A stretch of DNA of 64,000 bases. Source: Paragordius varius. Taxonomy: Eukaryota; Animalia; Nematomorpha. The translations under genes were made by a program, and so were the position numbers. Where the stretch lies: assembly GCA_964247055.1 (NCBI GenBank), contig OZ176051.1, forward strand, positions 12,152,001-12,216,000. The letters run 5' to 3'. This document shows positions 14,541 through 39,069 of the stretch, piece by piece. Position 1 is the stretch's first letter. Every line of letters starts with the position of its first letter. The notes beneath the pieces were generated by a model. The model was not told the origin of the DNA. It worked only from the letters and a program-made list of their open reading frames with translations, and ran no database searches.

Positions 14541-17327
14541 TTATAAAGATTTATGGTAAAATTGATATGTTTGAAAATTTTCTAAATGTTCCGGACAAAC
14601 TTCCATAACTCGCAAAACGAGGGAATCGACATAATGTTTCATTAGTTGATTTTCAGTTGTTAAATCTGTAAAAAATTGTAGAGATAACAAAAAACCAAAT
14701 ATTTTGGGTTTTCTATAAATAAAGTATTCATTTAATGGTTGTATAGTTAGACAATTCACACAGTAGTGTATGAAAAAAACAACAAAATGTTGAATAAACA
14801 ATCTATTTCTATCTTAAATCCCATATACTAATGTGTTACAAATTGCCCTACTATAGTATAGTGTGAAATTAATTTTAAAGGAAACAAATTAACTTACATA
14901 AGTTACAAATTTAGGTACGTTTATATATATTCTTTTGGGTTTAACTTATTAATTTGTCCCAGGGAAAAATATTTTAAATTCGATTATAATACATACATAA
15001 ACAAACTAATGTAAATTCAAAGAGTCGCATTTTTAAAATTTTTTTTACCTTCAATATGTTTGCGCAAACTTTGAATTTCGGCAATCAGCGTATCTTTCGA
15101 GCCTAAAAAAAATATAAAATATTAAAGTGTGGGATATTATTAGGCCATAATTTATTTAAACGAATAATAAAGAATAAATTTTAATAAACTGTAGCCACAT
15201 GTAAAAAGATTAAGTTATAAAGAGCTAGAACCACGAAAATTTTTTAATACTGCCTTTTATTTTTTTGAATTAAAAAAATATCTCTTTTTGATATACCATT
15301 TACACTTCGAATTCACCCTTAAACAGTTCAAATCACCCTTGAACAATTTATATTCACCCTCGAACAATTGAATTTTATCCCAAAATATATTGTGTGTTTT
15401 TTAAGATTAAAAATTACCTATAAAATTAAATTTTGTTTAAAATTAAATTAATACTAAAAAAAATAAAAACTAAGCCATAAAGATATATTTTATATTAATA
15501 ATGAGTTATATCAGCCTGAAAACACATAATTTATTTTTAGGGATTTGAATTATTGAAGGATGAATTGTTCGAGGGTAATTCTGAATTGTTCAAGGGTGAA
15601 TTTAAATTGTAAATGGTATATGTTTTCGAGAAAAGTAGCATATAATAAATTTTGGCAGTTTTTATCCAATTGTGGATATTTATTCATATTTCATATAAGC
15701 CATAAAAAATTAAAAAATATAAAGCAAAACGGAAAGGTTTTCATAAAGAATAAATAATTTTTAAATATAGATATAATAAGGCATAAAAATTACATTGTTC
15801 AAGCGCGTTTAAACCTTTGTGGTCAGCGCCATTGCTTTTTGCATAAGAATTCATATAGGTATCATTTTTTACGCCATTCGTTATGTTAGCTAATGCCGTT
15901 TTAGGATTAAATCGTTTCATTACAATTTTATTATTATTGGTATTAGCAGTATTGCTGTTTATGTTACCATTTACATTTGCATTATCAAATTTGTTGTTCT
16001 TCTTGTTAAAATTCGTGTCTTCGTACGATTTTGTATTACTTTGTTGCTACATGTAAAAATATATACCATTTACAGTTCAAATTCACCCTAAAATTATGTT
16101 TATAAGATTAGAAACTACTTACATTTTTTTATATTTTTAAAAAATAAAATTTGGCTCAAGATTATTATAGTATTGGAAAACTAATAAACTATGCCATAAA
16201 GATATATTACATAAATGATAGGTTATATTTGCTTGAAAACATATAAATTATTTTTGGGGTGAACTTAAATCGTTCAAGGGTGAATTTGAATTGTTCGAGG
16301 GTGAATGAATTGTAAATGGTATATGTATATATATATCGGATTTTTAAACTTAAAAAGCATGAAATATTTTATGGATTATATTTTAGTAAAAAAAACCTCA
16401 GTTGTTGCCATGCGTTCAGACAATGTTTTGGACAAATTTATCGATTTTTTGTCTATTAAACCGGAATTTTTAACAAAATTGTAGTCACTCCCGGGTTTCG
16501 CCGCTACAATATTAGGTAGTGAATTTAAATCCTTGTTCCCTTCAGATGATATATACGTTTGCTCTTTAGAATTCGGGTTGCCATATGGATTGTTTGTTAA
16601 AGCTGTGTTACTGAAATTCTCTAATTTAGATTCTGTATTTTTATTGCCAGTTTCAGACGCAATCAATTCATTGTAAAAATGACCGCCATAGCTTTGGGGT
16701 TTTTGCGATCGGTCAAGGGAAGAATTATAATGTGTACCCTTTTATTGGTAAATAATAAATATTACGATAACCTAATAAAATTATTTACAAAAACTGTGAA
16801 AATAATTTAAACTACTTTTTGATACATATATATTATATAAACAGAAAATGAACAAACAATTAAAAGTATTACATACATTCATTGTATTTTCATCCATTTT
16901 GATGGTAAAATCGATTAAACATCGTCCAACACCACCAGATTTCGTAACCAATAATATATTATTATTTCTTTGGGTAAATGATGAATTATTTGCGCTTACC
17001 GTATTTTTAGTGGGCCATAAAAGTACACTAACTTTCGAAGCATTATAATAATTTAAAGTTCTAGTGCAATCGATTCCAGCAATGTGGATTGAAATAATAT
17101 CTTCGGCATTTAAACCTTAAATATATTTATTCACAAAACAATTTATATGAAATCCAGGGTGACTGAATATCGGATAGAAATAAAATCGATTGGTGGAGAA
17201 TTTTAATCGTATACATAAAAATAAAAAAAATGAACGGCATTTTATTTTTTACTATATTATCTTGTTAAAATTGATGATATTAAGCTAATTTCGTTGAGTT
17301 AATTATCATATCTAACAAAAAATATTT

Positions 17328-17371
<44 letters not shown>

Positions 17372-18935
17372 AACACAGACAGATAATATTAAACCTAAAT
17401 TTTGTCCACGCAAAATAATCTTTGTTTCTCGATCAATAGGAGCTTCCATAGGAGATATCCCCGTTATAATAGGTCTTGTATCGTTTTCCATCGATATTTT
17501 TTCGGTATTATTATATGTTTGTGAATTCAATGCAGCATTGAGTGGAAGTGTACAACTTTTGTTACCAGCGTCTTAAATTTTATTTACAAATTTTATGAGT
17601 TTATACATTCACATAATAGAGGAGAAATATTAAACATAAAAAAACGGTATAATAACCATGTTTTGAATTATTCCCAAATTCATAGGAACGAGAACTGGCT
17701 CTTCGTATTCCGAATTGGGTGTTTTCTTTATCCAAATCTAGGCTTGAATCACCAAACTGATTTTCACTAAACGTAATAATTTGTCATTTTTCGCATCAAA
17801 ATAAAATATTTAATAGGTTTAAAAAAACTATCTTTAAGGCTCAAATAATATGTATATTGGTTAAACCAATGTTTATTTTCTCTTAATAGATTACTTATTT
17901 TTATTGGCGTTTGATGCATTTGTAGTCCCAAAGTTAGCTTTGTGGAAAATAGCTTTGACAGCTTGAGAAAATTGTGATGGCAATTTTCCACTACTGCTAG
18001 TACTTTGATTTGCACCTAGGTGGCCAGAAGATGTTGTAGATCCATCATTTGAAATTGAGTCGGCTGGTCTAGTCTTATTTGACTCATTCCCCTCAAATGA
18101 TGGGATGTTGTTCCCACTTGCATTACGCTTGTGATGATGATGATGCTTTATAAAATCAGAAATTTCTGAAAATGTGTCTTTGGTAGTGTTGTTTTGAGGG
18201 GTAAACGATGAGCGGATTTCGCCTCCCAGATGACTTATGGCTTTTGTAAGTGAGCCAGACGATTTTTTCTTGTTACCAGTTGGTTGTGTATTTTTTTGTG
18301 TCGATACATCATTTACTTCATCTTCCATATTTTTATTTAGTTTACCATCCTTAATATTAGAAAGTGACTCTTTTTTCTTCACAGATTCGTTTCGTAATTG
18401 AGGGCTGTCCGTTCCTTGAGCACCGACAAGATGATATTTAGTTATCCAAGCTTCGTAAATAAGAATTGGTATCGTTTTTTCTTTATCGCTACTTATTTGG
18501 GTTACTTCCTTCGTTGAATCTTGTATAATTTGTGATGTGAAACGTTTAAGTGACGTGGACAATTTCGTGAGAGGTATAGTAATTTTCCCAACGGTTACAT
18601 TTTTATCCATAATATTAAAAAGAAGTGGTTTATAATACTCTATAAATTTACGATTAATTTACTGGAACTTTTGGAATTTTGTACTTTTACTGGGCTAAAT
18701 TTATAAAATATAATTAATACATTGATTGCTCCTCATTCCATATCGTAATACCGGCCAATGATTCCGATTGGATTGTTGTTTTATACTTTTCATTCCCAAT
18801 TCCAAATATCACGGATAATCCATCTTAAGTTACAGTCAATTAAAAACCTTTTTTGCTATTAATATTCCGTGCCTCACACACTATGATAAAAATAAAATAA
18901 AATTTACCTAAAACCTGAATTTCATCAATTTCCAT
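14541..18935 (-). CDS. Class I Rab11 family-interacting protein (Rip11/RAB11FIP1/2/5-like): C2 - linker - Sec5-like IPT/TIG - linker - FIP-RBD, 746 aa
   Basis: Twelve phase-compatible exons: 18935-18908, 18880-18848, 18823-18721, 18694-18663, 18639-17895, 17766-17657, 17571-17395, 17115-16877, 16738-16397, 16046-15794, 15102-15049, 14665-14541 (2241 nt). C2: IQVLVCEARNI...GIGNEKYKTTIQSESLAGITIWNEE...VGKITIPL. RBD: SKDTLIAEIQSLRKHIEDLTTENQLMKHYVDSLVLRVMEVCPEHLE. Confidence 0.88.
15291..15621. mobile_element. ATATACCATTT-family MITE, copy 1 (FIP intron 10)
   Basis: Termini ATATACCATTTACA / TGTAAATGGTATAT with subterminal ~21-bp ATTCACCCTTGAACAATTCAA-like repeats in inverted orientation. Confidence 0.85.
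16061..16324. mobile_element. ATATACCATTT-family MITE, copy 2 (FIP intron 9)
   Basis: Same TIRs and internal AACTA(T/A)GCCATAAAGATATAT core as copy 1. The end lies about 12 nt from the acceptor AG at 16047-16048. Confidence 0.85.
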
Positions 18936-38814: not shown

Positions 38815-39069
38815 ATATACCATTTACAGTCCAAATTCACTCTAAAATAAATTGGTGTTTTTTAGGATTAAAAATTAATTTTATTTTATTATATTTAATA
38901 TTAAATTCTGATTAAAATTAATATAATGCTGAAAAAATAATAAACTATGTCGTAAAAATATATTTCATATTATGATGAATTATATTATCCCGGAAACACA
39001 TATGAATTCGTTTTGTTCAAAAGTAAATTTGAATTGTTCGAGGGTGAATTTGAATTGTATATGATAAAT
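38815..39069. mobile_element. ATATACCATTT-family MITE, copy 3, between the convergent METTL6-like and POLR1D-like stop codons
   Basis: Intact left TIR ATATACCATTTACA, degenerate right TIR TGTATATGATAAAT, and the same GAATTGTTCGAGGGTGAATTTGAATTG subterminal repeat. Confidence 0.75.

Follow-up and report, generated by a model that had tools for sequence, protein, structure and literature searches.

In the genome of the nematomorph Paragordius varius, a stretch of 64,000 nucleotides (contig OZ176051.1 of assembly GCA_964247055.1, positions 12,152,001 to 12,216,000 of the forward strand; referred to here, at its full length, as 'the window') carries on its minus strand a predicted gene, apparently single and intact, in which the exons for a C2 domain, for an IPT/TIG domain resembling that of the exocyst subunit Sec5 (also termed EXOC2), and for the Rab11-binding helix of the Rab11-FIPs (the RBD-FIP domain) are joined in one reading frame. 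Comparison of its predicted product with public protein sets indicates that this C2-IPT-RBD architecture is no peculiarity of the window genome, and that it defines a conserved, unnamed protostome family, which is arguably a candidate new class of Rab11-FIP that goes without a name in the public gene sets. The description of the gene and of its family, as given below, is regarded as highly probable. For its function, the preferred reading (to which a probability of approximately 0.55 is assigned) is that the encoded protein is a class-I-like Rab11-FIP adaptor, in which the C2, RBD and IPT domains would engage lipids, Rab11-GTP and Ral-GTP, respectively.

Structure and integrity of the gene

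The gene was rebuilt from the sequence of the window, which is eukaryotic and has a guanine-plus-cytosine (GC) content of 27%. The resulting model extends on the minus strand from 18935 to 14541 and comprises 12 exons and 2241 coding nucleotides (nt), that is, 746 codons followed by TAA, for a predicted protein of 746 amino acids. All 11 of its introns are bounded by GT and AG, the phases at their boundaries are compatible, the frame contains no internal stop, and no stop or start signal separates the C2, IPT and RBD modules. An initial annotation of the window had proposed a phase-consistent frame of 12 exons, which the rebuilt model reproduces, and the peptides that it quoted do lie on the minus strand where it had placed them. 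The exons are as follows ('Gordionus' denotes the nematomorph orthologue discussed below):

18908..18935, minus strand: exon 1; ATG at 18935, beginning of the C2 domain (MEIDEIQVL), with an N-terminus that aligns with Gordionus MTMEINEIRVIVCEAK
18848..18880, minus strand: exon 2; 33 nt, encoding a C2 strand, behind an intron of 27 nt (GT-AG, phase 1)
18721..18823, minus strand: exon 3; core of the C2 domain (SVIFGIGNEKYKT...WNEEQS), a block conserved throughout the family
18663..18694, minus strand: exon 4; a 32-nt micro-exon between introns of 26 and 23 nt, required for GT-AG boundaries and phase
17895..18639, minus strand: exon 5; 745 nt, closing part of the C2 domain and low-complexity linker 1 (identity to Gordionus 53% in the C2 part, 22% in the linker)
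17657..17766, minus strand: exon 6; linker
17395..17571, minus strand: exon 7 (IPT exon a); linker and first part of the IPT domain as far as RGQNLG (RPIITGISPMEAPIDRETKIILRGQNLG), with a Pfam TIG match (E 4.7e-4)
16877..17115, minus strand: exon 8 (IPT exon b); remainder of the IPT domain, including an inserted loop that is specific to the lineage (about 10 residues; TKNTVSANNSSFTQRNNN)
16397..16738, minus strand: exon 9; linker 2
15794..16046, minus strand: exon 10; linker 2, rich in asparagine
15049..15102, minus strand: exon 11; beginning of the C-terminal coiled coil (SKDTLIAEIQSLRKHIE)
14541..14665, minus strand: exon 12; RBD-FIP helix (KHYVDSLVLRVMEVCPEHLE) and TAA stop, with a Pfam RBD-FIP match (24.1 bits)

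At the junction within the IPT domain, exon a ends in ...GGACAAAATTTAG immediately ahead of the donor gt, exon b opens with GTTTAAATGCC immediately behind the acceptor ag, and the codon that is split between them (G/GT) specifies glycine, which yields the continuous peptide RGQNLG/LNAEDII in exactly the form that had been quoted. The peptide encoded by the micro-exon (IPVKVQNSKSS) aligns with Gordionus IKVVNNNSHSS as a homologous segment, and exon 8, when used by itself as a phmmer query, retrieves the C2-IPT-RBD family.

The assignment of all of these exons to one gene follows from (i) colinearity with the Gordionus protein; (ii) the existence of a homologue with the same domains in a single open reading frame; (iii) a modular pattern of conservation; and (iv) sequence variants that respect the frame. 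Regarding the first, the orthologue from Gordionus sp. m RMFG-2023 (Nematomorpha), the closest sampled relative of the window genome, is a protein of 689 amino acids with one IPT domain that is annotated as 'uncharacterized protein LOC135931197', an identical sequence being held under both a RefSeq and an ENA accession (XP_065324212.1 and CAK9293613.1). The deposited annotation of that genome, which has a GC content of 26.9%, was guided by RNA sequencing (RNA-seq), and the window model is colinear with the Gordionus protein over its entire length, both by BLASTP (E 4e-72) and in a global alignment. Identity between the two proteins rises and falls with the modules, at 53% in the C2 domain, 22% in the first linker, 55% in the IPT domain, 30% in the second linker and 68% in the RBD (residues 688-746). 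The homologue termed P0003, with 957 amino acids, combines a C2 domain, three TIG domains and an RBD-FIP domain, and its architecture requires no inference of splicing because it is encoded by a single uninterrupted open reading frame of 2874 nt, which is present in three assemblies, two of them from NCBI and one from SRA (L001:2051-4924, from GCA_029979725.1; L002; L003).

The variants considered are the best-supported subset of the differences between the window and related DNA sequencing runs. Among these listed variants, the exonic substitutions comprise 18 synonymous and 9 non-synonymous changes, with the former accounting for both substitutions in IPT exon b and for all four in the two RBD-encoding exons. 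The three exonic insertions or deletions among them are each 3 nt in length, while seven of the nine outside of the exons are not multiples of three; the 3-nt change in IPT exon b, seen in a related run, falls within the inserted loop. Joint skipping of both IPT exons, which sum to 416 nt, would shift the frame ahead of the RBD, and any product that bears the RBD is therefore predicted to contain the IPT domain.

Several further properties of the locus were noted in the course of this reconstruction. Intron lengths are bimodal, with the first four introns (within 18640-18907) measuring 27, 24, 26 and 23 nt and the others 85 to 691 nt; the P0003 gene, as against the 12 exons of the window gene, is intronless in its own genome. 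A (TA)n microsatellite lies at 17322-17383 in the intron that separates IPT exons a and b (intron 7), and the same intron is flanked by a direct repeat, GTTTAA, that leaves its boundaries ambiguous by a few bases and the spliced product unchanged. Introns 9 and 10 contain a periodic repeat with a unit of approximately 21 nt (TTCACCCTTGAACAATTC...), found in both orientations at 15312-15370, 15547-15600 and 16267-16305 and again near 39031, 49274 and 49467, with 11 matches in the window versus 0.04 expected. Summed contig depth reaches approximately 1e5 to 1e6 over these repeat stretches and over 14714-14870, versus about 300 in the flanks; this suggests a very high-copy element resembling a miniature inverted-repeat transposable element, with the understanding that summed depth is no copy number. 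A genetic code of the ciliate type, which had come under consideration on account of the introns of 23 to 27 nt, was rejected, there being no in-frame TAA or TAG in the 746 codons and a TAA directly after the RBD; an interpretation of the long introns as TA-bounded eliminated sequences was set aside, all boundaries being GT-AG and in phase.

The IPT, C2 and RBD-FIP modules

The initial annotation had identified the middle segment of the protein as an IPT domain of Sec5 type, and this assignment holds by sequence and by the predicted fold. The Pfam TIG match of exon a covers only the N-terminal half of the domain because the domain is divided between two exons; for the same reason (exon a being half a domain) a phmmer search of the PDB with that exon alone returned only a weak match to MET. 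Once spliced, the window IPT (residues 380-486) matches a local hidden Markov model, built from three family IPTs and one EXOC2 IPT, with an E value of 9.2e-22, and in a BLASTP comparison of the whole model with a true EXOC2, residues 384-480 pair with the N-terminal IPT of the latter (residues 5-89) at 34% identity (E 4e-14); such matches greatly exceed what chance would produce. Identity of the window IPT to two EXOC2 IPTs is 35-36%, versus 12-26% to plexin TIG domains; in family members of annelid type, identity to EXOC2 reaches 44-52%. The TGISP motif of the first strand and the IRG.NLG and TKSGG motifs are common to the family IPT and Sec5.

Structure predictions were made on the Gordionus orthologue, as a proxy for the window protein. 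The sequence of the Gordionus IPT finds its best PDB match in Sec5's Ral-binding domain (1UAD/1HK6, E 3.4e-10, with plexin-A4 at 0.014), and its AlphaFold2 model is composed of seven strands with a predicted local distance difference test score (pLDDT) of 85.2. When that model was compared with known structures by Foldseek, the best match was again this domain of Sec5 (chain C of 1UAD; E 2.7e-6, template-modelling (TM) scores of 0.72/0.81, 31% identity), followed by 1HK6, whereas IPT/TIG structures from other proteins gave E values of 1.7e-3 or weaker; its best fold match in the ESM Atlas was an EXOC2 cluster (TM 0.74).

A phylogenetic tree of IPT domains, one of the checks that the initial annotation had proposed, contributes little to this assignment. 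The tree (34 domains, 97 columns) is mostly a polytomy, in which the window and Gordionus IPTs are paired at 100/99 and placed among the IPTs of the spiralian members of the FIP family, not with EXOC2. A tree constrained to a clade of FIP-family and EXOC2 IPTs was not rejected (p value of 0.53 in the approximately unbiased test, p-AU).

The C-terminal module was recognized by Pfam above its gathering threshold: the last exon matches RBD-FIP (PF09457) at 24.1 bits versus a cut-off of 23.3 (E 3.3e-5), as the annotation of a C-terminal FIP-RBD had anticipated, and others of the family match this domain less well (E 0.0022 for P0003, 0.015 for Gordionus and 0.063 for Owenia). In the PDB, a profile of the family C-terminus finds the helices with which FIP1 (4d0g, E 9e-4), FIP2 and FIP3 bind Rab11. 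Through that profile the window YVDSLVLRVMEVCPEHLE is aligned to YIDNLLVRVMEETPNIL of FIP1 (4d0g), with a conservative change of Ile to Val, and the Y-I-D hydrophobic patch and the helix that follows it, which contact the Rab11 switch regions in FIPs, are kept in the window protein. Matches of coiled-coil type are found upstream of the RBD motif.

The assignment of an N-terminal C2 domain, also made in the initial annotation, rests on homology and on the predicted fold of the orthologue; a Pfam scan of the small window exons returned no C2 match. Residues 2-165 of the window protein align to the Pfam-positive C2 domain of P0003 (E 1.6e-10), a profile of the family N-terminus matches C2 structures with an E value of 1e-7, and AlphaFold2 predicts for the Gordionus N-terminus a sandwich of eight strands, with only C2 domains among its top PDB matches.

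Distribution of the family and its relation to known adaptors

Members of the family were found in the annelids Paralvinella palmiformis (KAK2146876) and Owenia fusiformis, in the bivalves Crassostrea virginica (LOC111128182) and Pinctada imbricata, in Gordionus (LOC135931197) and in several unplaced assemblies, and each of them contains one, two or three IPT copies. In addition, a cluster of 53 mainly molluscan 'hypothetical proteins' in the ESM Atlas displays a C2 domain in 100% of its members and a TIG domain in 98%, with RBD-FIP detected in 13%. The uniqueness that the initial annotation had implied for the window protein is therefore contradicted; the architecture occurs in many gene sets, and it is functionally annotated in none of them. 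Family entries are without exception labelled hypothetical or uncharacterized, or have been given the automatic name 'Exocyst complex component 2', as in the UniRef entries for the Paralvinella (P0001) and Owenia (P0037) proteins, the latter of which consists of a C2 domain, a TIG domain and a coiled coil with RBD. This name is likely a misnomer that spread from the similarity of the IPT domains, because Pfam scans of the window exons and of family proteins, P0001 included, gave no match in any of them to PF15469, the Sec5 exocyst domain that follows the IPT in Sec5/EXOC2; a true EXOC2 (P0039), serving as a control, scores 7e-157 for the same domain. A literature search turned up no description of a FIP with an IPT/TIG domain, with most subscription journals lying outside its reach.

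Among characterized proteins, the family most closely resembles the class I Rab11-FIPs (FIP1/RCP, FIP2, FIP5/Rip11 and Drosophila Rip11), which bind Rab11 as parallel dimers. Both groups possess an N-terminal C2 domain, a long disordered middle region and a C-terminal coiled coil that ends in an RBD-FIP helix, on which the patch reads Y-(I/V)-D ... RVME..P..L, and in the Atlas no named clusters come closer than those of class I once the cluster of the family itself is set aside (at scores of 0.77-0.78, which serve as a lead only). As the initial annotation had stated for those of vertebrates and for fly Rip11, the known class I proteins consist of C2 and RBD alone, and canonical FIPs indeed form separate Atlas clusters without TIG; they contain no globular domain between C2 and RBD, whereas the family inserts one to three Sec5-type IPTs at that point, and the window protein departs from the C2-plus-RBD layout by its IPT/TIG domain at residues 380-486. 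Within the RBD, FIP1 has Thr-Pro where the family has a Cys-Pro of its own, and spiralian members, with their one to three IPTs, possess an RBD that is more divergent (YMD/YLE/YID...V(M/I)..CP). The IPT-bearing family may be paralogous to the canonical FIPs of class I, a relationship suggested by the presence in molluscs of separate clusters with C2+TIG(+RBD) and with C2+RBD only, the latter containing 63 members (score 0.77, again a lead only); the family would then probably not be orthologous to Rip11, and molluscs appear to have both kinds.

The Sec5/EXOC2 IPT (1UAD, 1HK6) is the best match to the family IPT in sequence and in fold, and both proteins are cytosolic and belong to membrane traffic. 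They differ in that PF15469 follows the IPT of Sec5 alone among the proteins scanned, in that identity to the Sec5 IPT is approximately 35% in nematomorphs and 44-52% in members of annelid type, and in that the window protein adds its loop insertion. The class II FIPs (FIP3/Arfophilin-1, FIP4 and Drosophila Nuf) provide a functional analogy, since they couple Rab11 to a second GTPase (Arf6/Arf5); they contain EF-hands and neither a C2 nor an IPT domain, and bind Arf through a coiled-coil region, not an Ig-like domain. FIP3/Arfophilin is described as a dual effector of Rab11 and Arf6 (PMC5002984).

Ral binding and alternative explanations

The putative binding of Ral is suggested by the positions at which Sec5 contacts that GTPase. 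The initial annotation had named counterparts of Sec5 Thr11 and Arg27, and the alignment does place a Thr (in IITGISP) and an Arg (in ILRG) at those two positions of the window protein, both of them within exon 7. The Thr11 position is occupied by Ser in Gordionus; the Arg27 position retains Arg in Gordionus and in all family IPTs other than those of two bivalves. Arg27 of Sec5 is said to be a Ral-contact residue. For Thr11, a published account (PMC12407918, citing Fukai 2003) describes a hydrogen bond to Tyr36 of RalA and a sharp loss of affinity in the T11A mutant. In the two bivalve proteins (P0036, from Crassostrea virginica, and P0038, from Pinctada imbricata) the Arg27 position is occupied by Glu, and the first-strand motif has diverged (IVKVSP and ITSVTP). 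These differences predict that putative Ral binding has probably been lost or altered in that lineage. For the nematomorph IPT, putative Ral binding is judged to stand close to an even chance.

A number of considerations weigh against the reading of the window protein as an adaptor for both Rab11 and Ral. Two conserved contact residues are no proof of Ral binding, and the bivalve Glu indicates that such binding, if ancestral, would not be universal across the family. With the IPTs of EXOC2 the window IPT shares only some 35% identity, and its loop insertion is absent from the other IPTs aligned; the IPT tree resolves little, and the predicted folds are those of the Gordionus proxy. Finally, none of the sequencing runs recorded for the locus is listed as RNA, and the four public runs that were compared with it were judged to be DNA because the introns are covered and the joints are confined to intronic repeats, with no splice joints among them.

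In a possible, if somewhat doubtful, alternative, the gene and the family are as described and the IPT domain keeps its Sec5-like fold without binding Ral; it might, for instance, bind cargo, a subunit of the exocyst or a different small GTPase, or serve as a spacer or for oligomerisation. On this view the protein would be a Rab11 effector of the usual kind to which a scaffold domain has been added. The modest identity of nematomorph IPTs to those of EXOC2 (35-36%), the bivalve Glu at the Arg27 position, a tree that by itself resolves no clade of FIP-family and EXOC2 IPTs, and the presence of one to three IPT copies, which is unusual for a strict 1:1 sensor of a GTPase, can all be reconciled with this explanation. 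It accounts less readily for the fact that, outside of the bivalves, the first-strand segment P-x-(V/I)-(T/S)-G-(I/V)-S-P and the segment (I/L)-R-G-x-N-L-G, in which the counterparts of Thr11 and Arg27 lie, rank among the best-conserved stretches of the IPT in both the family and EXOC2, or for the conservation of the nematomorph IPT as strongly as the C2 domain.

Two further explanations concern the origin of the architecture itself. It is highly improbable that the gene model is an artefact, either assembled from modules of two or more neighbouring genes or containing IPT pseudo-exons that never enter the messenger RNA: the sequencing runs over the locus are all DNA, and the tiny C2 exons have no Pfam match of their own, but such an artefact is difficult to square with end-to-end colinearity with an RNA-seq-guided Gordionus protein, with the presence of all three domain types in one open reading frame in P0003, with window junctions that are all in phase (11/11) and uninterrupted by a stop or start between modules, and with changes in the IPT and RBD exons that, among the variants listed, are synonymous or 3 nt in length. 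That the architecture is instead a young oddity, produced when the sole Rip11 orthologue of an ancestral nematomorph received a copy of the IPT exons from the EXOC2 gene of the same genome, is considered extremely improbable; the confinement of the IPT to two dedicated exons and its likeness to Sec5 would suit such a capture, but the same layout is found in annelids, in bivalves and in the 53-member, mainly molluscan cluster, the nematomorph IPTs sit in the tree with those of the spiralian family and not with EXOC2, and the separate mollusc C2+RBD-FIP cluster points to an old paralogue.

Under the preferred reading, the window protein would combine three attachments, each proposed by analogy with a characterized protein. 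Its C2 domain would bind acidic lipids of membranes, like that of the class I FIPs; its C-terminal helix, probably as a dimer, would bind Rab11-GTP on recycling endosomes via the YVD...RVME..P..L patch; and its IPT domain would bind Ral-GTP by pairing its first beta-strand with switch I of Ral, as does that of Sec5. The protein might thereby be recruited to sites at which Rab11 and Ral are both active, acting as a coincidence detector, or might tether Rab11 carriers to membranes marked by Ral. The exocyst receives GTPase inputs from Rab11 via Sec15 and from Ral via Sec5 and Exo84; the proposed link would mirror these inputs while operating outside of the exocyst. The initial annotation had put forward either a coupling of this kind or a role as a Ral decoy, and both would depend on the putative Ral binding.

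In its broadest form, the proposal is that the family represents a fourth, previously unrecognised class of Rab11-FIP, dating back to the protostome ancestor or earlier and seemingly missing from flies and vertebrates, in which one or more Sec5-derived IPTs bind Ral-GTP and create an exocyst-independent tether between Rab11 and Ral; as a whole, this is put forward tentatively, with the odds lying somewhat against it. In practical terms, several database entries that bear the name 'Exocyst complex component 2' would instead be FIP-like adaptors. Rab11-FIPs are the main adaptors that provide Rab11 carriers with motors and destinations, and Sec5 is, to our knowledge, the only Ral effector that binds Ral through an IPT domain. 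If the proposal is correct, the family would form a direct, exocyst-independent bridge from Ral signalling to Rab11 recycling, and the Ral-binding module of Sec5 would have been reused in the course of animal evolution.

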